DNA of 64,000 bases from Hypanus sabinus (GCF_030144855.1 NC_082714.1:45260001-45324000), one strand, 5' to 3'. Shown: positions 3,325-58,500, counted from the stretch's first letter. The notes: generated by a model not told the origin, from the sequence alone. Program-made: numbers and translations.

Positions 3325-4245
3325 TCTGAAATCTAAGATGGCGGCACGACGCAGCTTGCAGCGGCCACTCCGGAGCTGATTATCTGTTATTTGTGAAGTG
3401 GGGTGCCATGCGCAATCATAATCAATTGAAAACGGACGTGGGAGCACGGAGGAACATCGGGAACATCTCCAGGAAGACCTTCTTCGTTGCTGCTGCTGCT
3501 GTGAGGTCTGGGACTCTGCTGGGAAGAACAGGACCCCAGTCCTCGGGGTTGCTTTGCAGATGGCCGTTGGCAGGGCCGTCTTAATACGCTCGGCAGAAGA
3601 TGGTGCTCAGAGAATCTGTGCCGGAGGGAGTGATTGTCGGCTTGGAGGTTCGACGGACTTGAAGTCCGCTGTGGTCAGGTCGCTTTCGGTGTGTGCTGCG
3701 TCTGGAAGGCTGGTTTTGACGAAGCTATCGTTGAGTGCTGCGTCTGCAAGGTTGAGTTGGGCGGCGCCGTGGAAGTCCATAGCAGAGGTACTCCCTTCTG
3801 CCGCCAGCGTGGGATGGCGAGTCTGTCAGGACCCTGGGGACTTGTGGAAACTGTGTGGTGATTTCTTTTGAACTTATAGTCCTTTAACATCTTTGGACTA
3901 TTTTTACTGTGCCCATGTTCTGTTTTTTTTTATCAATTATGCTATTGTTTGCACTGTTGTAACTATGTGGTTTTGTGCAGGTCTTGTAGCTTTAGTTTTT
4001 GGTCTTGTTTTTGTCTGGTGGAATTGGAGCTCCTTTCCGGGGAACGCGCTAAGACGGTAGCGTGATATTAATATGCAGCAGCATCTCCGGACTCTGGATT
4101 GGGGATTGCCAAACGTTTTGTGGATTTCTGGTGTAGTCCGTTTTGTCATATGCTTTTGTGATATCATTCTGGGGGAATGTTGTCTCATTTTTTAACTGCA
4201 TTGCATTTGTGGTTTCTAAATGACAATAAACCGAATCTGAATCTG
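3325..4245 (+). mobile_element. ~920-bp non-autonomous retroposon (YY1-motif head, Rex1-like tail), copy 1
   Basis: Aligns end to end with 54051-55586. Head AAGATGGCGGC; tail tgacAATAAAccgaatctgaatctg; candidate 5-bp TSD AAGAT (3320-3324 and 4246-4250). Confidence 0.8.
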
Positions 4246-9019: not shown

Positions 9020-11241
9020 ATGGGGGGGAGCGGGAATCAATTTGAGGAAACTATGGGAAAGGAGGTTAGTTCACCAGTAGAGCAAGTAAGTAGACAATGT
9101 GTGAGGGAGGAAAGGCAGGTGATGGAGAAGGGATGCACTCAGCCCGAAGATGTAGGGGAGAAGAAAGAAAAGGATAATAAATTTGAATGCATTGTTAGGG
9201 ATGAAAAGAGAGGAGGAGGTGGAGAGTATCTTAAATGTATCTATTTTAATGCTAGGAGCATTGTAAGAAAGGTGGATGAACTTAAAGCGTGGATTGATAC
9301 CTGGAATTATGATGTTGGAACTATTAGTGAAACATGGTTGCAGGAAGGGTGTGATTGGGAACTAAATATTCCTGGATTTAGTTGCTTCAGGTGTGATAGA
9401 GTAGGAGGGGCCAGAGGAGGAGGTGTTGCATCTCTTGTCCGAGAAAATCTTATGGCGGTGCTTTGGAAGGATAGATTAGAGAGCTCCTCTAGGGAGACTA
9501 TTTGGGTGGAATTGAGGAATGGGAAAGGTATAGTAACACTGATAGGAGTGTATTATAGGCCACCTAATGGGGAGCGTGAGTTGGAAGAGCAAATGTGTAA
9601 GGAGATAGCAGTTATTTGTACAAATAACTTTGAGGAGGTGCGAAGGGATTTAGAGAGAGTGGATTGGGTCAAGTTGTTTTATGGGAAGGATGTAATAGAG
9701 AAATGGAAGTAATTTAAGGGTGAAATTATGAGGGTACAGAATCTTTATGTTCCTGTTAGGTTGAAAGGAAAGGTTAAAGGTTTGAAAGCACCATGGTTTT
9801 CAAGGGATATTAGAAACTTGGTTCGGAAAAAGAAGGATGTCTACAATAGATATAGGCAGCATGGAGTAAAGGAATTGCTCGAGGAATATAAAGAATGTAA
9901 AAGGAATCTTAAGAAAGAGATTAGAAAAGCTAAAAGAAGATACGAGGTTGGTTTGGCAAATAAGGTGAAAGTAAATCTGAAAGGTTTCTACAGTTATACT
10001 AAAAGCAAGAGGATAGTGAGGGATAAAATTGGTCCCTTAGAGAATCAGGGTGGTCAGCTATGTGTGGAGCCGAGGGAGATGGGAGAGATTTTGAACGATT
10101 TCTTCTCTTTGGTATTCACTAAGGAGAAGGATATTGAATTGTGTAAGGTGTGGGAAACAAGTAAGGAAGTTATGGAACCTATGACAATTAAAGAGGTGGA
10201 AGTACTGGCGCTTTTAAGAAATTTAAAAGTGGATAAATCTCTGGATCCTGATAGGATATTCCCCAAGACCTTGAGGGAAGTTTGTGTAGAGATAGCAGGA
10301 GCTCTGACGGAGATCTTTCAGATGTCATTAGAAATGGGATTGGCGTATTGCTCATGTGGTTCCATTGTTCAAAAAGGGTTCTAGAAGTAAGCCTAGCAAT
10401 TATAGACCTGTCAGTTTGACATCAGTGGTGGGTAAATTAATGGAAAGTATTCTTAGAGATAGTATTTATAATTATCTGGATAGACAGGATCTGATTAGGA
10501 GTGGCCAGCATGGATTTGTGCGTGGAAGGTCATGTTTGACAAACCTTATTGAATTTTTTGAAGAAGTTACGAGGAATGTTGACGAGGGTAAGGCAGTGGA
10601 TGTAGTCTATATGGACTTCAGCAAGGCCTTTGACGAAGTTCCACATGGAAGGTTAGTTAAGAAGGTTCAGTCGTTAGGTATTAATGCTGGAGTAATAAAA
10701 TGGATTCAACAGTGGCTAGATGGGAGATGCCAGAGAGTAGTGGTGGATAATTGTTTATCGGGATGGAGGCCGGTGACTAGTGGGGTGCCTCAGGGATCTG
10801 TTTTCGGCCCAATGTTGTTTGTAATATACATAAATGATCTGGATGATGAGGTGGTAAATTGGATTAGTAAGTATGCCAATGATACAAAGGTAGGAGGTGT
10901 TGTGGATAATGAAGTGGGTTTTCAAAGCTTGCAGGGAGATTTATGCAGGTTAGAAGAATGGGCTGAACGTTGGCAGATGGAGTTTAATGCTGAGAAGTGT
11001 GAGGTTCTACATTTTGGCAGGAATAATCCAAATAGAACATACAGGGTAAATGGTAGGGCATTGAGGAATGCAGTGGAACAGAGAGATCTAGGAATAACAG
11101 TGCATAGTTCCCTGAAGGTGGAGTCTCATGTAGATAGGGTGGTGAAGAAGGCTTTTGGAACGCTGGCCTTTATAAATCAGAGCATTGAGTACAGAAGTTG
11201 GGATGTAATGTTAAAATTGTACAAGGCATTGGTAAGGCCAA

Positions 11242-11272
<31 letters not shown>

Positions 11273-11645
11273 GAATTATAGGAAAGATATCAATAGATTA
11301 GAGAGAGTGCAGAGACGATTTACTAGGATGTTACCTGGGTTTCAGCACTTAAGTTACAGAGAAAGGTTGAACAAGTTAGGTCTCTATTCATTGGAGCGTA
11401 GAAGGTTGAGGGGGGATTTGATCGAGGTATTTAAAATTTTGAGAGGGATAGATAGAGTTGACGTGAATAGGCTGTTTCCATTGAGAGTAGGGGAGATTCA
11501 AACGAGAGGACATGATTTGAGAGTTAGGGGGCAAAAGTTTAAGGGAAACACGAGGGGGTATTTCTTTACTCAGAGAGTGATAGCTGTGTGGAATGGGCTT
11601 CCTGTAGAAGTAGTAGAGGCCAGTTCAGTTGTGTCATTTAAGTAA
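9020..11645 (+). pseudogene. CR1 ORF2 (endonuclease-reverse transcriptase), disrupted
   Basis: Three fragments (9020-9712, 9728-10384, 10356-11645). EN motifs FNARSI, ISETWL, YYRPP; RT motifs NYRPVSLTS, QHGF, DFSKAFD, GVPQGS. The EN C-half (GDFN..SDH) is deleted near 9620, there is a stop at 9710-9712 and a frameshift near 10340, and the catalytic ADD motif reads YAND. Confidence 0.93.
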
Positions 11646-11900
11646 AATTGGATAGGTATATGGACAGGAAAGGAGTGGAGGGTTATGGGCTGAGTGCGGG
11701 TAGGTGGGACTAGGTGAGATTAAGAGTTCAGCACGGACTAGGAGGGCCGAGATGGCCTGTTTCCGTGCTGTGATTGTTATATGGTTATATGGTTATAACT
11801 GTTCCCACAAACTATAGATTCACTTTCAAGGACATTTCACCTCATGTTCTCAATATTATTGCTTATTGATTATTACTGTTGTTATGTCTGTTTATTTTTT

Positions 11901-13120
11901 CTCAGCTCAGACTGGTAAAACCTGAGATACAGGCATAGCCAAGCATGCTCATTTGTCAATAGCTAGAAACTTTTGGACTAGTCTTGTGGTGCTTAGTATT
12001 GTGACTCTTTCTGGAGACTGTTACGAAACCCCGTAACTAGGTCACTTACCAGCAAAGATAGAGAGGTCCGTTGAAGTCTGATGGTACTATTTTTTTTAAG
12101 TATTTATTGATAAAGGGGCACAAAAATAAGATTAATGCAAACATACAGATAATATACATCATCAATACTAAATCTAAAGCGTGGGTATAATAATAATCAA
12201 TAAGAAATAGCTCTATTGTTGTCTAGGGGATAATGTTTTGTCCGATGGAAATATAACAGTCACTGTTAGTTCGTTCACGCTGCAGCATTTTTAGGTTTAA
12301 GAGCGAGGCAGTTTAAACTTGCCCAGGTCTTTTATGATGCCAATCCGTTGAGTCAGGGGAGTGGGTTTCCCCGGTGTTAGCTAATAGCTGTTTCCATGGT
12401 TTCAGCCACCAGTTCCAGCCACGGAACTGAACGCACGTGGCCTCCTTCAGAAGACTTCCTGCTATATCGTGGTCGCTTAACGTTTCTTCTGGTGCGTCTG
12501 AGGGACTGTTCCTACAGACCCTCTTTTATCCTGACTCGCAGGGTCGTAGATGTCAATCAGGTTGGGGGTGATGCAGTCTCTCCCTCAACCAGCCCACTCT
12601 GCCTGAGGGCGTTCACGTAGCATAGTATCTCAATCCACAAATTTGTCTCCAAAAGACAATGGCCATGTCCCGTAGCTTTACATCGCCGGGGAAACGTCTC
12701 TTCTCCCATTTCCTGGGCCCCTTGACCCAACCCAATAGTGATCATGCGATTCTCACAAAGGAGGGGGCTACAGACGTAACAAGACTTACAGACATAGTGC
12801 TGAGTAACCCTAATTGTTTAATGCTATTGTGCAGTGCCTTTGGGATGATATGAATTGTAGATATTATTATCAGGATAATGCATACCCTGTTCATGTTCCA
12901 ATGTCTTTCAATTTCCTCTTTTAACTCAGCATATTTCTGGTTGTTTTCACTCATTGATTTCTGTAAGTTATGTGTTTTTGGAATGGCTATTCCTATTAAA
13001 TAAGTTGTTCTTGCTTGTTTAACCTGTGTTATGATATCCAGATGGTTATTTTGGATTGTCCTATATGTAACAACTGATCGGTCATAATATAATTTGTGTA
13101 TTCTGACTCGAAAACTAGAT
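11901..13120 (-). mobile_element. R4/Dong-like non-LTR retrotransposon 3' fragment (restriction-like endonuclease), interrupted by a solo LTR
   Basis: ORF 12742-13260 contains KLYYDRSVVT..TI.NNHLDII...TTYLIGIAIP...KYAEL..EI...W, a decayed RLE PD..D..K domain. It continues past the LTR at 12014-11950 as VTILSTTRLVQKFLAIDK*. Confidence 0.75.
12019..12781 (-). mobile_element. Solo LTR (763 bp), Gypsy/ERV-type
   Basis: Termini TGTTACG...CGTAACA (perfect 7-bp inverted repeat); 4-bp TSD AGAC (12015-12018, 12782-12785). AATAAA on the minus strand near 12105 suggests orientation. Confidence 0.88.
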
Positions 13121-51030: not shown

Positions 51031-52378
51031 TTCCTTATGAAATTTTGCTAGGCTTCAATGAAAGAGAATTTCAATTGGAGAATTACTTAGCTATTACATG
51101 ATTCTTGTCACAAAATGAGCTGGCAGTATTGGAACCCACATGTCAAGTAAATACAGACTTAGATGTAGAGACGGTGACTAGAGTTTAGTCATAATAATTC
51201 CAAATGAAAATTGGTGTCGTGGCTGAGAGTTATCACAAGCAGTAACATTCTCAAAACTAGGACCCCTTGGTTAGAGCTAATCTGGCGTCTGCTTAAATAA
51301 TACAAGTAACATGAAATCCCAGAGCCTATTAAAATAAACTTGACAAGCTGAAACAGAAAACACCAGGAATCCATATTACAAAGAGTGAATCACTCAAGAG
51401 GAAAACACAAGGAACTCTAAATCATTAACAACTTTCATTAAACAACAATTAATGAATTCAGGTGTTCTAAAAGCCCAACATTCACTGCTGCCCTGCACAG
51501 GACCAAAGAGCTCCTTACATTTCTGGAGATTATTGAATTCGAAGGATTTCAATAAACAGACAAAACTTATGAAGTGTTTATTTCCTGGGCACATAATTGT
51601 TGGGGCACATAGAAGAGGTACAATTATTTAATATTAGTTAGGGTAAGGGCAGCAGAGTTAAAAAATAAAGAATAATTAACAATATTGTAAGTCAAGGATG
51701 ACCAAAAGACCAATGGATAACCTAAAGACAACAACAGCAGGGTTGAAGTTTTCAAAGGTAGATGAGTTGAGATGGCAGATGAGATGAAATAAGGTTACAG
51801 AAGTACAAGAAGCCAGTCATGGTGATGAAAAGAATTGTGTATCTGAAGCTAAAATAATTACTTTAATTAGGATGATAAGATTACAAACGATCTAGATTCT
51901 GAGAGTCAGGGGAGTTGGTAGCCAAGCAACAGAGTGAAACTCCATTTGATGTAAGGAACACCTGGTCAATGCAACTAAGTGCTAATAAGTGAGTCCAATC
52001 CAGCAGTCTCTATTATACAGATAATATTAATGACCAAACATGGGTTTCTTATCCTCCTTTCAGAAAATAGTTGATCAATATCAATTACATACTTTTCGTC
52101 TATTTTCTATTGTGCCGTTGTGTAAGGAACACATGACTGAAACAGGGCTAAGTTTTCCTATTATATAACTTGATGTTTGAAGGCAGTTCAATGTTTCTTG
52201 GGATAAGACCTTTTTTGGTTCAGGTGAAGTAGTGATACTTTTTGAAAGCTCCTGTGGAAACACTGCAATGACAAACATAAGTGATCAGCAGCTTCACTTT
52301 TAATCCATTGTTGACTCTGAAGGGAATGCAACAAGTCCACGAATTCTAGTGTTAATTTCATCCCATGCTGGACTTGGT

Positions 52379-52522
52379 TGGATTGTTCTTTGTCAGGGAC
52401 CTCACCCTCGACCTTACTGCCATGGGTGACCCTACAATGAGCATAGCTCCAGACGGCATTGCTCTCGGGATCTCAGGACCACACAAGCTTCTCCACCATG
52501 ACAAGGTGACAATCCATGGAGA
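52379..52522 (-). ncRNA. HDV-like self-cleaving ribozyme fold (RTE 5' end, inverted)
   Basis: Minus strand: P1 UCUCC/GGAGA, P2 UGGAUUGU/ACAAUCCA (8 bp), P3 ACC/GGU, 7-nt L3 UUGUCAU, J4/2 CAAA with candidate catalytic C at 52392, in HDV order. P4 not resolved by eye. Confidence 0.65.
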
Positions 52523-54050
52523 TGGAACAGGTGGACGAAGTTACTTTGAATTCAACGGCTGTGAAGGCGGATGAAGGCTGCAACAAATCCATCAGCTCCG
52601 ATCGTCGTGGTTTCTATGTCATTGGAACCAGTTGGTTGATTTGTGAAGTAACGTGTGCTTCTTGGAGTGCAATATCAAGTACACGTTAAACAAATACATG
52701 CACAGGCGTCTTTGCTCTGTGGGCCACATCCTGAAGTCTTTTGGCGATCGGGGGAGGACGATGGGAGCAGGCAATGTGATGGCTGGAAGCTCCTAGTCAA
52801 GAACCAGCACGAAAGTGGTGAATACTTGATACAGTCGCTCAACTTTTGTACAGGAGCAGGGAAGTTGTTCGGTCGCAGTATTCACGTCTGAGCAGCCCTA
52901 CTTAGGATCCATCTGCTCACCCTGAACTGGGGGGTGGGGGGTGCTAGAAAAGGTGCCATAAAAATAGTCTGCTTCACCCCATCCTGTCTGGAAAGCCGCT
53001 TCCAGAGGGATCACCATAATGCAGTTGAAAAACATCGAGAAGCAAAACTGTGAAATCTGGAACCTGGAATACACGGACTCTGATGGATAACCCAAACTCA
53101 GACCGACCAGAGTGGAGAACTGCCTTTGTTGCCCAGGCACTCCAAAAATTCAACTTTGGCATTGTTGCTCTGAGTGGGACCCGCAGAGCTGTAGGAGGTC
53201 AACTAAAGGAAGAGCAAGGTCAATACACCTTTTTCTGGAAAGGACTCGATCCTGAACAAACGAGGATCCATGGAGTAGGTTTTGCCACCTGAAACAGCCT
53301 ACTTCAGAAGCTGACAAAGCAACCACTGGGAATCAATGAACATCATATGACTCTATGAATCCTGCTCATCAAGAACCAACATGCCTATGCTCCAAATCTG
53401 GATGCTGAAGATGAAGTAAAGATGAACTTCTACACCCAACTTGATGACGTCCTTTCCTCTGTTTCCAACAACGAGAAGATCATTCACTTGGGAGACTTCA
53501 GTGCCAGAGTCGGGAAAGATCATAGGCTCTGAACTGGAATAATAAGCAAGGAAGAAGTTGGCAAGGTCAACGCCAATGGAACACTCCACCTCACCCAATG
53601 TGCTGAACACAACCTGGTGATTATAAACACCCTATTTCACCAGAAAAACAGGCACAAAGTCTCCTGGCAGCATCCACGCTCCAAACACTGGCACCTCATC
53701 GACTACATCATCGTATGATCTTGGGACCAACAAGATATACTGATAAGAAGAGCTGTTACTGGCGCCAACGAGTGCAGGATAGACCATCGACTCATCTCAT
53801 CCACCATGAGAATGAAGATTTGGCCCAAAAGGAAACATCAAAATCAGAACACTATTAAGAAATTCAATGTTGACGTCCTTCAAGACATCAACCATGTACA
53901 GAAGTTCCAACGAAATCTTCAAGAACAACTGGCTCAACAAATCTCCCATCTGTATAAGAACACTGTAATCAATTGAAGAACAGTATCATCACCTCCTGCA
54001 AAGAAACAATTCGGTTCAAGATGAAAAAACATCAGGATTGGTTCGATGAT

Positions 54051-55586
54051 CCAAGATCCAAGATGGCGGCATGACGCAGCTTGCAGTATTGGAGTATAAA
54101 AATATTATGGAGTATAAAACTTGTATTACTTGCTGTGTAACCAAAACTATGTAGTCAGTTTGTTATGCATGTACCCAAGATGAAATGCTAGGAATGTAGA
54201 ATGCTGTGTTGATATATGTTAATGAGAGGTAGCTAAGAGATGTAGTCAGCTTTGAAGTTTGCTATTTGCTATGCATGTATTCAATTGAATGTAGAAGACA
54301 ATGGTGTGGTAATGAGAGGTAGCTAAGAGATGTTTTGCTTTGAACTTGTTTGCTGTGTAACCAAAACTATGTAGTCAGCCTTGATGTAGATTATGTAGTT
54401 TGAACTTGCTATTTGCTATGCATGTACCCAATTTAGTAGGAGAATGAAATCTTAAGAATGTAGAAGACAATGGTGTGTTGGTGAGAGACAGCTGGGAGAT
54501 GTGGATTGGAACATGATTAAGTCAATGGGACGTACGTGTGAAACTGGACCAGGATTTTGCTATAAAAAATGCCGTGTCCGAGGATTGGTGGGTAATCAGC
54601 GACTAGCTCACTGACTGTCTCAGCTTTGATTTGCAAATTAAAGTTTAACCCTTCTTGAAGAATCTTCTGCGTCTCCTGGTCATTTGTGAGGCACGAAAAA
54701 CCACAACAGCAGCAGCCACTCCAGAGCTGATTATCTGTTATTTGTGAAGTGGGGTGCCGTGCGCCATCTTAATCGATTGAAAACAGACGTGGGAGCACAG
54801 AGGAACATCGGGAAATCTCCAGGAAGATCTTTGTTGCTGCTGCTGCTGTGAGGTCCGGGACTCTGCTGGGAAGAACAGACCCCCAGTCCTCGGGGTTGCG
54901 TTGCCGTTGGCAATTGGCAGGGCCGTCTTAATACGCTCGGCAGAGGATGATGCTCAGAGAAGCTGTGCCGGAGGGGATGGTCGTCTTCTCAGAGGTTCGA
55001 CGGACTCGGAGTCCGCTGCTGTCATGTCGCTTTTGGTGTGTGCTGCGTCTGCGAGGCTGGGTTCAACTGAGCTTTCATTGTGTGCTGCGTCTGCAAGGCT
55101 GAATCGAGCCGTGCTGTGGAAATCCATAGTGGGGGTACTCCCTTCTCTCACCGGTTTGGGATGGCAAGTCTGTCGGTACCCTGGGGACTTGTGGAAACTG
55201 TGGTGATTTCTTTTGAACTTATAGTCCTTTAACATCTTTGGACTATTTTTACTGCGCCCATGGTCTGTTTTTTATCAATTATGCTACTGTTGTAACTATA
55301 TGTTGTAACTATGTGGTTTTGTGCAGGTCTTGTAGCTTTAGTTTTTGGTCTTGTTTTGTTTGGTGGATTTGGAGCTCCTTTCCGCGAAACGCACTAAGAC
55401 GGTAGCGCGATATTAATATGCAGCAGCCTCTCTGGACTCTGGATTGGGGATTGCCAAACATTATGTGGATTTTCTGGTGTAGTCTGTTTTGTCATATGCT
55501 TTTGTGATATCATTCTGGAGGAACGTTGTCTTATTTTTTAACTGCGTTGCATTTGTGGTTTCTAAATGACAATAAACTGAATCTGA
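54051..55586 (+). mobile_element. Non-autonomous retroposon copy 2 (same family as 3325-4245), nested in the RTE and split by a solo LTR
   Basis: Head CCAAGATCCAAGATGGCGGC, tail AATAAActgaatctga, TSD ATGAT (54046-54050, 55587-55591). Confidence 0.88.
54087..54708 (+). mobile_element. Solo LTR (622 bp), 4-bp TSD
   Basis: TATTG (mutated TGTTG)...CAACA termini, TSD GCAG (54083-54086, 54709-54712), TATAAAA at 54561, ATTAAA near 54637, and shuffled 20-30-bp direct repeats in U3. Absent from the sibling copy at 3361. Confidence 0.88.
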
Positions 55587-58500
55587 ATGATAACGACAAA
55601 CTATTCCAACAACTCATCGACGAAAAGAGAAAAGCTTTCATCATCTTACAAAATGAGCAAAAATCAGCTACCAAAAGAAAATGCTATCAGGAATGCAAGG
55701 CTACAGTCCAGAAGAGCACCAGAAACCTGAAAACCCGATGGTGGAGGAAGTAAGCTCAGGAAATCCAACAACTAGCGGATGCCAACCACACTCGAGGCTT
55801 TTTCAAAGCAACAAAAGCTATTTTTGGCCCATCCACTCACAGTCAAGCCCCTCTCAAAAGCAAAGATGGTTCAACCATCCTGAAGAGCAATGCTGACATC
55901 AATTCTAGATGGAGGGAGCACTTTGAAGATCTTCTAAGTCAAACCATCTCATTTGACAAGAATGTGATCAACAACATTCTGAAGCAGCCCATTGACGACT
56001 CCCTAAGCAAAATACCAACACCTGAAGAAGTCGAGGAAGCCTTCAAAACCTTTACAAACCACAAGGCCATTGGACTCGATGGAATACCAGCCGAAGTCTG
56101 CAAAATTGGGGGTAACCTGCTTCAGTACCAACTGCATCAACTTCTTATCAAGATCTGGATAAATGAAGATGTACCAGCAGATTTTAGAGACACAGCAATT
56201 ATTACTATCTACAAAAGGAAAGGCGATCGATCCGAATGCCGACACTATCGTGGAATTTCCCTGTTAGCAACAGCAGGAAAGATCCTCACTTACGTTATTA
56301 ACAACAGGCTCAAGCCTTTAGCCGAGAAGATCTTTCTGGAGACACAAGCCGGTTTTAGACCATTACATGGAGTAATCAACATGATCTTCATAATGCGACA
56401 ACTAACAAGAAAAACATTGTGGACAGCTTCAACCTTTGTACATGGCACTCATCGACCTGACCAAAGCCTTTGACTCAGTATCAAGGGAACTCCTATGGGA
56501 TGTCCTATCCACCTATGGATGCCCTGAAAAGTACATTCGAATCCTGAGACTCCGCCACGATGGCATGCTTGCTACAATCATGGTCAGCAATAGTAACTGT
56601 GAGCCTTGTCAAGTCAGATCAGGAGTAAAACATGGATGCGTGATTACCCCAACTTTGTTCACCATCTTCATTGCGAGAATCATCCACGTCATCAAGGACG
56701 ACCTACCCCCAGAAATCAAAACTGTCTACAGAATAGATGGCAGACTTTTCAACCTTGCCCGTCTCAAGTCCAAAAACAAAACACCCACAAGTTCCCTTAT
56801 CGAGTTTCAATACGCAGATGACAACAGTGTTGCAGCTCTCTCAGAAAACCACCTACAACAGATTCTGACTGCCTTCAACCATGCATACACGAAACTTGGA
56901 CTTACCATCAATTCCAAGAAGACTCAGATCATCTAGCAACCATCACCAACTGAGACAAATTGTATAGAACCATCAATTCAACTTGGCAAAATAACCCTGG
57001 AAAATGTGGACCACTTTATATCTTGGAAGTCACCTCTCCTCCAATGTTGACCTTAATGATGAGATCCAACATTGTCTTAAATGAGCTGGAACAGCTTTTG
57101 GACATCTCTGAACAACAGTCTGTCATGATCGTGACATCCAAACAGACACCAAAATGTTAGTGTACAAAGTAGTGGTAATCCCAGCGCTCCTGTTTGCATC
57201 AGAAACCTGGACAACATACCAATGACATCTGAAGGCACTTGAAAAGCTCCATCAACGCTGTCTTCGAAACATCTTACATATCAGCCGGGAAGATAGAAAA
57301 AGCAATGTCAGCTTGCTATATGAAGCAAAAACAACGGGCATTGAAGCCTACATCATCAAGAATCAACTAAGGTGGAGCGGTCATGTTGTTCGGATGAAAG
57401 ACGAACATCTGCTGAAACAAATCTACTCCCAGCTTAAAGAATGCAAACGTAAAAGAGGCGGACAACAGAAGAGATTCAAAGATGTCTTAAAAGCCAACAT
57501 GAAGAAATGTAACATTGACATCAGCAATTGGGAAACCAATGCCAAGGACAGGGAACACTGGCAAACCATCATCCGAGAAGGAACAGCAACTTTCGAAGCC
57601 AACGGATGTGCAGAATTAGAAGAGAAGAGAAGAAAATGGAAAGAGAGACAGCAACAACCAAAGCCCGATCTGCCATCTGGAACTACCTGTCCTGAATGTA
57701 GAAGAACTTTCAAAGCCAAGATTAGACTCATAAGCCACTTGAGAACCCATAAATAGATCATCGGAACGAAACCCATCATCCTCGATCTTGAGGGACAGCC
57801 ACGAAAATGCTGGTGAAATGGCATTTTAGAGTATTTTTGCTCAGTAACACAAAAAGTTATGTAGTTAGTCAAAAAAAGATTGTATTATATTATTCAGCAA
57901 AAAAAGTTGTTACATTTCGCAGTACTTACAATATATATAAAAAAGGCTAGACTATCTCTCCAACAAGTAACTTTTGCAACCGAGTTATCATTCAGGGATC
58001 TATTTTATTCTTTTCCAAGTGGACAGTAGCAAAGGAAAATTCTGTTTTGGTCTTTATTTCTTTCACTCACTGCTCCCAAAGCACTATTTCTTAATTACAT
58101 TTTAAGACTTTAAGCTGTTGCTCAAATCACGTGTTTCCTCAAACTAAAAGCTATTTGCTACCAAGGGATATAATTATCTAGAAATAAAACTAATGTTAAA
58201 ATAGTGCAGAGTGGATGATAACTCCCTGAAGAAATTCAAGAAATTGTCTGAAAGCAATTTGAAAATATGTTAGAATGGTTTACATCCAGAAACACCTGCT
58301 AAATCACAGCGCACAGCTTCTAACAAGTTCTCAGCCCTTAAAGGCACAGTCCTCACGGCAGCAAAACAATATATTGTCTGCAATGGAGCTGGGTTATACT
58401 GTTGAGCAAGAGGGCAAGAGGGGAAAAGGGGGAAGTCAGTGAGGGAGAGGTGTCATCCAGCAATGAGAATAACCACATTATGGAAAAATATTGAAACAAA

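Follow-up and report, generated by a model that had tools for sequence, protein, structure and literature searches.

A decayed RTE-like element in the Hypanus sabinus window

A 64,000-nucleotide stretch of the Hypanus sabinus genome (GCF_030144855.1, NC_082714.1:45260001-45324000; hereafter the window, with positions counted from its first letter) was analysed, and the region between 52365 and 57813 proved to be occupied by one decayed retrotransposon lacking long terminal repeats (non-LTR), a long interspersed element (LINE) lying on the + strand, whose first ~150 nt, referred to below as the head, are in the opposite orientation. Once a nested 1541-bp repeat is removed, the LINE is 3894 bp long, and its reading frame comprises ~1065 codons over 53019–57756, from about 53019 to the stop codon at 57754–57756, with many stops and frameshifts in between. 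The inverted head (52372–52522, − strand) is followed by the sense 5′ leader (52523–53018, + strand), and no coding signal was seen in the resulting 650-nt leader of the LINE. The first part of the open reading frame (ORF; 53019–54045, + strand), which contains several stops and frameshifts, corresponds to the endonuclease region, as its N-terminal homologues P0096 and P0098 carry the PF03372 endonuclease family; a comparison of P0018 with an endonuclease piece was uninformative. The second part (55587–57756, + strand) is likewise decayed and encodes the reverse transcriptase (RT) and a C2H2-like finger. Pfam RVT_1 was detected here in two pieces on the + strand within 55754–56933 (E = 4e-6 and 1.3e-18), in agreement with the + strand ORF reported in a preliminary description of the stretch, while the finger lies at the extreme C-terminus and ends at 57753, with a Pfam zf-C2H2 score under its cut-off. 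The short 3′ untranslated region (UTR; 57757–57806, + strand, 50 nt) ends in ...CACGAAA and has no poly(A).

Members of the RTE clade have a single ORF of ~920–1066 amino acids with an apurinic-type endonuclease (APE) and RT, no separate large ORF1 and a length of 3.2–3.9 kb (PMC1291365), and their very short 3′ UTR closes with short repeats in place of poly(A). The window LINE has one long APE and RT ORF and a size in this range, as well as a very short 3′ UTR without poly(A), and its shark relative L001 ends in short repeats. Its RT showed only distant similarity to L1 ORF2p and R2 (E 1e-7 to 1e-10), therefore the LINE is not an L1. We designate it RTE-like, an assignment made by architecture and not by RT phylogeny. 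One of its protein relatives bears the name "craniofacial development protein 2-like".

The nearest protein relatives (55–73% identity over window 55754–56470) were found in octopus, mantis shrimp, bamboo shark and mackerel assemblies and in marine metagenome contigs, a patchy distribution resembling that reported for RTE elements that spread horizontally. The L001 copy (9770–12367) belongs to Chiloscyllium punctatum and is a 5′-truncated member of the LINE family with 81–85% identity; part of it is annotated as the hypothetical protein chiPu_0000562, and its 3′ end consists of CACGA followed by a (CGA/TGA/CAA)-type microsatellite tail. Self-BLAST of the 64-kb window revealed no second copy of the LINE or of its head, and only the nested repeat recurred.

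One target-site duplication encloses both parts of the element

The heptamer ATGCTGG is present at 52365–52371 and again at 57807–57813, where it abuts the two ends of the element and encloses the inverted and the sense parts together. The claim that a single 7-bp target-site duplication (TSD) brackets the whole element was thus borne out. ATGCTGG is the sole common word of at least 5 nt between the two 41-nt junction windows, and the chance of such a 7-mer repeat is ~0.002 (0.2% of random position pairs in the window), as obtained from an empirical test on random position pairs that allowed a slack of 3 positions to the left and 9 to the right. Typical TSDs of RTE elements are 7–15 bp long and begin with A (PMC6007223). 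These features also bear on the proposal that the L1 machinery reverse-transcribed the RTE RNA in trans, which we regard as very unlikely, as poly(A) is lacking and the copy closes with the 3′ terminus of its family (...CACGAAA), the target ...TCATCCC/ATGCTGG is not of the TT/AAAA type, and a 7-bp TSD beginning with A suits RTE (PMC6007223).

The outer junctions were also recovered from other organisms. The 5′ junction is contained in an X19 contig of 975 nt, which covers 52100–52399 and passes from the unique flank through the TSD into the first 28 nt of the antisense head (52372–52399). It shows 10 differences in 300 nt, therefore it does not come from the source sample. The 3′ junction is spanned by contigs of X19 (57775–58099) and X9 (57754–58098). 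Since the X19 and X9 contigs span the 3′ junction, and X19 also the connection of flank, TSD and head, the insertion is old and common to at least two other organisms; the filled site was seen in organisms F and C, with flanks differing by 3–10%. Left of 52365 the sequence is single-copy. An exact match to this flank was found in contigs of X1 and X3; it reaches 52364, the last base ahead of the TSD, and is followed by 188 nt that were not placed on the stretch; this pattern is compatible with, and hints at, an empty site, which with a single TSD would read ...TCATCCC ATGCTGG TGAAATGG....

The same contigs are relevant to the suggestion that the assembler simply flipped a 150-bp segment. In its favour, the head is a very high-copy repeat and the inner junction 52522/52523 is spanned by none among the contigs listed, but the X19 contig, from another organism, has the unique flank and the TSD connected with the antisense head end (52372–52399) in just the arrangement of the window, and a 150-bp flip bounded by a TSD would be an odd assembler error. 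We consider this explanation extremely improbable.

The head is inverted relative to the other family members

To establish the orientation of the head in the family, contigs of four public runs representing four related organisms were aligned to 52100–58099 at a likeness of at least 80%; none of the public runs checked carries the locus itself at high share. An "opposite strands" joint leading from 52373 to 52523 occurred in all four runs (4, 4, 6 and 11 contigs, 25 in total), and the contigs concerned carried 27–45 letters on either side of it, while the minor variants 52373 to 52522 and 52373 to 52537 were represented by few contigs. Therefore, in other family copies the reverse complement of 52373–52522 stands directly upstream of 52523, the position where the sense leader of the window copy also begins. 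At the other end of the head, 142–185 contigs per run ended their match at 52522 and continued in unrelated AT-rich sequence (agreement 0.37–0.39) sharing only the letters AGA, hence 52522 on the − strand lies within 2–3 nt of the family 5′ terminus. The contigs ending at 52373 (63–85 per run) behaved differently, as they shared a common continuation (agreement 0.71–0.77), the reverse complement of which is ACCTCAACGG..., the leader start in the external loci L002, L003 and L005. The idea of a transmitted subfamily with an inverted head was also considered and found to be unsupported, as these contigs share a common continuation and not random flanks.

The external loci gave a concordant picture. 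The Logan contig L003 encodes endonuclease and RT in + strand ORFs. Its first 46 nt (L003:1-46) match the reverse complement of 52388–52433 (42/46 identical) and lead into the leader, the head being sense-oriented upstream of its APE/RT ORFs. In L005, which was located via a 27-nt pattern taken from the conserved core of the head, positions 352–499 represent a complete head in sense orientation matching window 52522 to 52378 with 83% identity; no TSD was found for the L005 element. L002 (1384–2443) is collinear with the window from 52524 on, with 75% identity. Its region upstream of the leader repeats could not be aligned to the window head, and a weak 6-bp candidate P2 seen there was not used. 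Judged by contig joints and external loci, the segment is thus sense and directly upstream of 52523 in other copies, and among the copies compared the head is antisense only in the window copy. The preliminary description had asserted that the first ~150 bp make sense only on the minus strand and had placed the inverted segment at 52372–52522; the orientation was upheld and the coordinates were correct within 1 nt, the best segment starting at 52372 or 52373 and ending at 52522.

On the + strand, the order is consequently TSD, antisense 150 to 1, sense 151 to the end, and TSD. Canonical position ~150, the more 3′ of the two ends in the RNA, borders the TSD at 52373, while position 1 lies at the far end of the inverted part (52522), and the sense part opens with the next canonical position (~151) at 52523. 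Canonical position 151, a T, is possibly present on both sides, at 52372 on the − strand and at 52523, which would mean a 1-nt overlap. Duplications of 1 nt at the junction occur in L1 inversions.

The leader opens on a series of imperfect tandem units of ~37 nt (CTCAACGG...GGCGGA.GAAG...), about 1.5 of which are present in the window copy (52523–52590) and about 2.5 in L002 (1339–1450). In most contigs of the stingray relatives the first unit opens with ACCTCAACGG, which is absent from the window copy.

The head is a predicted HDV-like ribozyme

For the structural comparison the head was numbered on the minus strand from 52522 (position 1), and all pairings were checked by script. Its segments follow one another in the order P1, J1/2, P2, P3-L3, P1′, P4, J4/2 and P2′. 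P1, at −2 to 5, pairs with 29–35; J1/2 is AU; P2, at 8–14, pairs with 137–143 (window 52386–52380), so that the fold ends at position 143; P3 is ACC/GGU and L3 has 7 nt. In the window copy the 5′ arm of P2 (GGAUUGU, 52509–52515, − strand) pairs at 7/7 positions with its 3′ arm (ACAAUCC, 52380–52386, − strand), which forms the last helix and is preceded by a conserved J4/2-like CAAAG. The 3′ arm of P1 is likewise preserved (GGAGAAG, 52488–52494, − strand), while its 5′ partner CUUCUCC is only partial (52518–52522), the first 2 nt being missing.

In L005 the corresponding helices are complete: P1 is GUUCUCC/GGAGAAU (7/7, with G.U at the base), P2 is GGAUCGC/GCGAUCC (7/7) and P3 pairs at 3/3 positions. 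Compared with L005, the window P2 (GGAUUGU/ACAAUCC) contains two compensatory pairs, and the first pair of P1 changes from G.U in L005 to C-G in the stingray family, the C, at position −2, being deduced from the loose-end letters AGA. The double-pseudoknot order with covariation of both P1 and P2 between L005 and the stingray head is that of an HDV-like (hepatitis delta virus-like) fold, and from this covariation the head is predicted to be a ribozyme of HDV-like topology. No clear P1.1 was seen in the head. Plain minimum free energy (MFE) folding of the head was no better than that of shuffled sequences on either strand (z 0.28 and −0.25), although pseudoknotted folds are invisible to this method.

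The inverted piece thus corresponds to the entire ribozyme-type fold and a linker of 7–8 nt, minus the first 2 nt of P1. With such a fold at the start of an element, the first nucleotide of the ribozyme becomes that of the processed RNA. Positions −2 and −1 are absent from the window copy and, assuming the P1 model, its inverted piece ends 2 nt short of the predicted cleavage site. The earlier statement that the inverted copy stops about 2 nt before this site was thereby supported: under the model P1 begins 2 nt past 52522, and the family contigs share the letters AGA after 52522.

A 46-nt core of the head (52388–52433, − strand), located within the putative P4 region and J4/2, shows 91% identity to L003, compared with ~65–70% elsewhere. 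A P4 stem would not be expected to be conserved to this degree, which hints at an additional role, such as promoter activity, protein binding or a tertiary contact.

Copy depth of the head and the nested repeat

In all four runs the summed contig depth of the LINE head and leader (52300–52700) and of the 3′ end (57100–57800) was 10–100 times that of the ORF. This distribution fits a very abundant short non-autonomous element sharing the ribozyme head and the RTE tail.

Because this depth means that short head-bearing copies are common in these genomes, two independent insertions have to be weighed as well, in which a 5′-truncated RTE element and an unrelated antisense copy of the abundant short head-bearing element would have come to lie side by side. 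The structure of the locus speaks against such a coincidence. The antisense piece consists of positions 1–150 only and has no 3′ tail, while target-primed copies are 3′-anchored, and ordinary target-primed reverse transcription does not produce fragments of the head alone that lack a 3′ tail. Moreover, the piece ends (150) and the body starts (151) at positions that complement each other to the nucleotide, and the two parts share one enclosing 7-bp TSD. The preliminary description had itself named a separate element with its own TSD as the finding that would overturn its proposal, and no second TSD was found. We judge two insertions to be highly improbable.

The nested 1541-bp repeat (54046–55586, + strand) is foreign to the LINE and is flanked by a 5-bp duplication, ATGAT. 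Contigs of all four runs contained a joint from 54045 to 55587 that skips exactly these 1541 nt, with 5 letters fitting both sides, and the ORF without the insert is uninterrupted in the shark copy L001 and in all four runs. A second copy of the repeat is located at 3331–4242 of the window. The repeat ends with CTGAATCTGAATG-like repeats downstream of AATAAA, and a tandem-repeat block inside it (about 54083–54708) is skipped in many other copies. Its contig depth was huge in one organism (X19, 2–6 × 10^5) and much lower in the others.

Twin priming as the probable origin of the inverted head

Directly established are the TSD, the fact that the head is inverted relative to the family, breakpoints that complement each other, and where the family 5′ terminus lies. 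Together they make it probable that the locus represents one insertion of an RTE-type LINE in which a second, opposite cDNA (complementary DNA) supplied the first ~150 nt, by twin priming or an equivalent two-primer event. The twin-priming geometry proposed earlier also held in its details, with a single TSD round both parts, position ~150 (52373) next to the TSD, position 1 at 52522 and position ~151 at 52523.

We infer the priming steps and the ribozyme-defined RNA end as follows. The RNA of the element would begin at, or 2 nt before, the position that is now 52522, which is the predicted cleavage site of the HDV-like head. Ordinary reverse transcription would start at the RNA 3′ end, primed by a nick in the bottom strand, and the top strand would be cut 7 nt away, its free 3′ end (...ATGCTGG) beginning a second reverse transcription ~150 nt from the RNA 5′ end. 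This second priming point would be situated 7 nt downstream of the ribozyme fold, and the cDNA started there would run to within 2 nt of the RNA 5′ end, while the first cDNA would halt at the neighbouring position ~151. The two cDNA ends would then be joined without visible microhomology. The resulting insert would be dead on arrival because its head is antisense, and it would later have been subjected to decay and to the insertion of the nested repeat.

A nearly identical end product would be expected if a normal full-length RTE element had been inserted and a later ~150-bp chromosomal inversion had flipped exactly its head, and the age of the insertion (present in organisms F and C, with flanks differing by 3–10%) left time for such a rearrangement. 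However, this history needs a chance breakpoint within 2 nt of the 5′ end of the element, and the absence of the 2 terminal nt on both sides of the segment is not predicted by a simple inversion. Flipping mediated by repeats was also examined: the sole inverted repeat is formed by the 7–8 bp P2 arms, which lie inside the segment, and the outer 6–7 nt on each side were flipped too, therefore a repeat-mediated inversion was excluded. A later inversion is thus an unlikely source of the structure.

Several observations weigh against twin priming or against parts of the model given above. By inspection, the overhang ...GCTGG-3′ has no complementarity to the RNA beside position 151, and the joint 52522/52523 is blunt, without microhomology; in L1 twin priming microhomology at both sites is frequent, but not obligatory (PMC2912911). 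From cell culture experiments it was argued that an overhang of ~5 nt is too short to prime (PMC4245944); the overhang here is 7 nt. In most other members of the family the head is followed by ~10 additional nt (ACCTCAACGG). No intervening letters are listed at the joints to 52523, which suggests that the subfamily of the window copy lacks these ~10 nt; alternatively, they may have been lost at the junction of the window copy, and either case fits twin priming. As to the ribozyme, an Rfam scan of 51800–58300 on both strands, up to E = 10, detected no ribozyme, tRNA or SINE-head (short interspersed element) family; in this copy 2 nt of P1 are missing and P4 is very large, and the curated HDV-type models were unmatched. 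Furthermore, none among the contigs listed independently shows the inversion junction 52522/52523, the empty site is only hinted at, and a single fossil is available, from which the mechanism is deduced.

Nevertheless, the data support a twin-priming-type fossil in an RTE-like LINE, a single case whose mechanism is deduced. We are somewhat inclined to go further and to propose that RTE-clade LINEs can twin-prime with a 7-nt overhang and without visible annealing, and that the fossil records a second cDNA running off the ribozyme-processed 5′ end of the RNA. Twin priming, which is known almost exclusively from mammalian L1, has been used to infer how LINE integration intermediates are resolved, and an RTE example in which the TSD has 7 bp and the joints are blunt suggests that reverse transcription can begin from the second-strand 3′ end in another clade as well, possibly without annealing, an ability of some non-LTR reverse transcriptases. 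The termination of the inverted piece within 2 nt of the predicted cleavage site is an independent, though weak, support for the start of the template RNA at this point. If these interpretations are true, the locus would provide natural, in-genome evidence that 5′ inversion is not restricted to L1, and that an HDV-like head defines the 5′ end of the template RNA of an RTE element in a vertebrate. As a single old fossil, its main value is as a motive for a genome-wide census of inverted RTE copies.

Comparison with known systems

Self-cleaving-type folds at the start of the element, like the one predicted in the head, are known as the 5′ HDV-like ribozymes of R2 (PMC3774820) and L1Tc (cited in PMC6765202), and the RTE element Perere-3 likewise carries 5′ ribozymes, which are twister variants (PMC8501958). 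The head shares with HDV-type ribozymes the order of P1, J1/2 (AU), P2, P3-L3, P1′, a large P4, J4/2 and P2′. It differs from them in its length of ~143 nt, the much enlarged P4, the lack of a clear P1.1 and of an Rfam match, and in its purely predicted status; in the stingray family the G.U at the base of P1 is also replaced by C-G.

The inversion itself closely resembles those of twin-primed L1 elements (Ostertag and Kazazian 2001; PMC2912911, PMC4245944), where similarly one TSD surrounds the antisense 5′ part together with the sense part, the inverted part turns its more 3′ RNA position towards the TSD, the two breakpoints are neighbours in the RNA (here with a duplication of at most 1 nt or a loss of ~10 nt) and the product is dead on arrival. 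Unlike these, the window element is RTE-like and has neither poly(A) nor visible microhomology, its TSD is 7 bp long, whereas L1 inversions peak at ~15 bp (PMC4245944), and its second cDNA would have reached within 2 nt of the RNA 5′ end because it was primed only ~150 nt away.

The literature found on twin priming together with RTE or BovB consisted of passing mentions and reference lists only, and the genomic RTE junctions analysed by Ichiyanagi and Okada (2008) may hold earlier RTE inversions. In cell culture, 5′ inversions were tied to long overhangs of 10–20 nt and were observed only with human L1 in human cells, plus one insert of Nimb-2_DR, while ZfL2-1 gave none (PMC4245944). This insert of Nimb-2_DR, a zebrafish LINE, in chicken DT40 cells resembles our case in being a 5′ inversion produced by a non-L1 LINE (PMC4245944); it is, however, experimental and belongs to a different LINE family, whereas the copy in the H. 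sabinus window is an old fossil left naturally in the genome by an RTE-like element.

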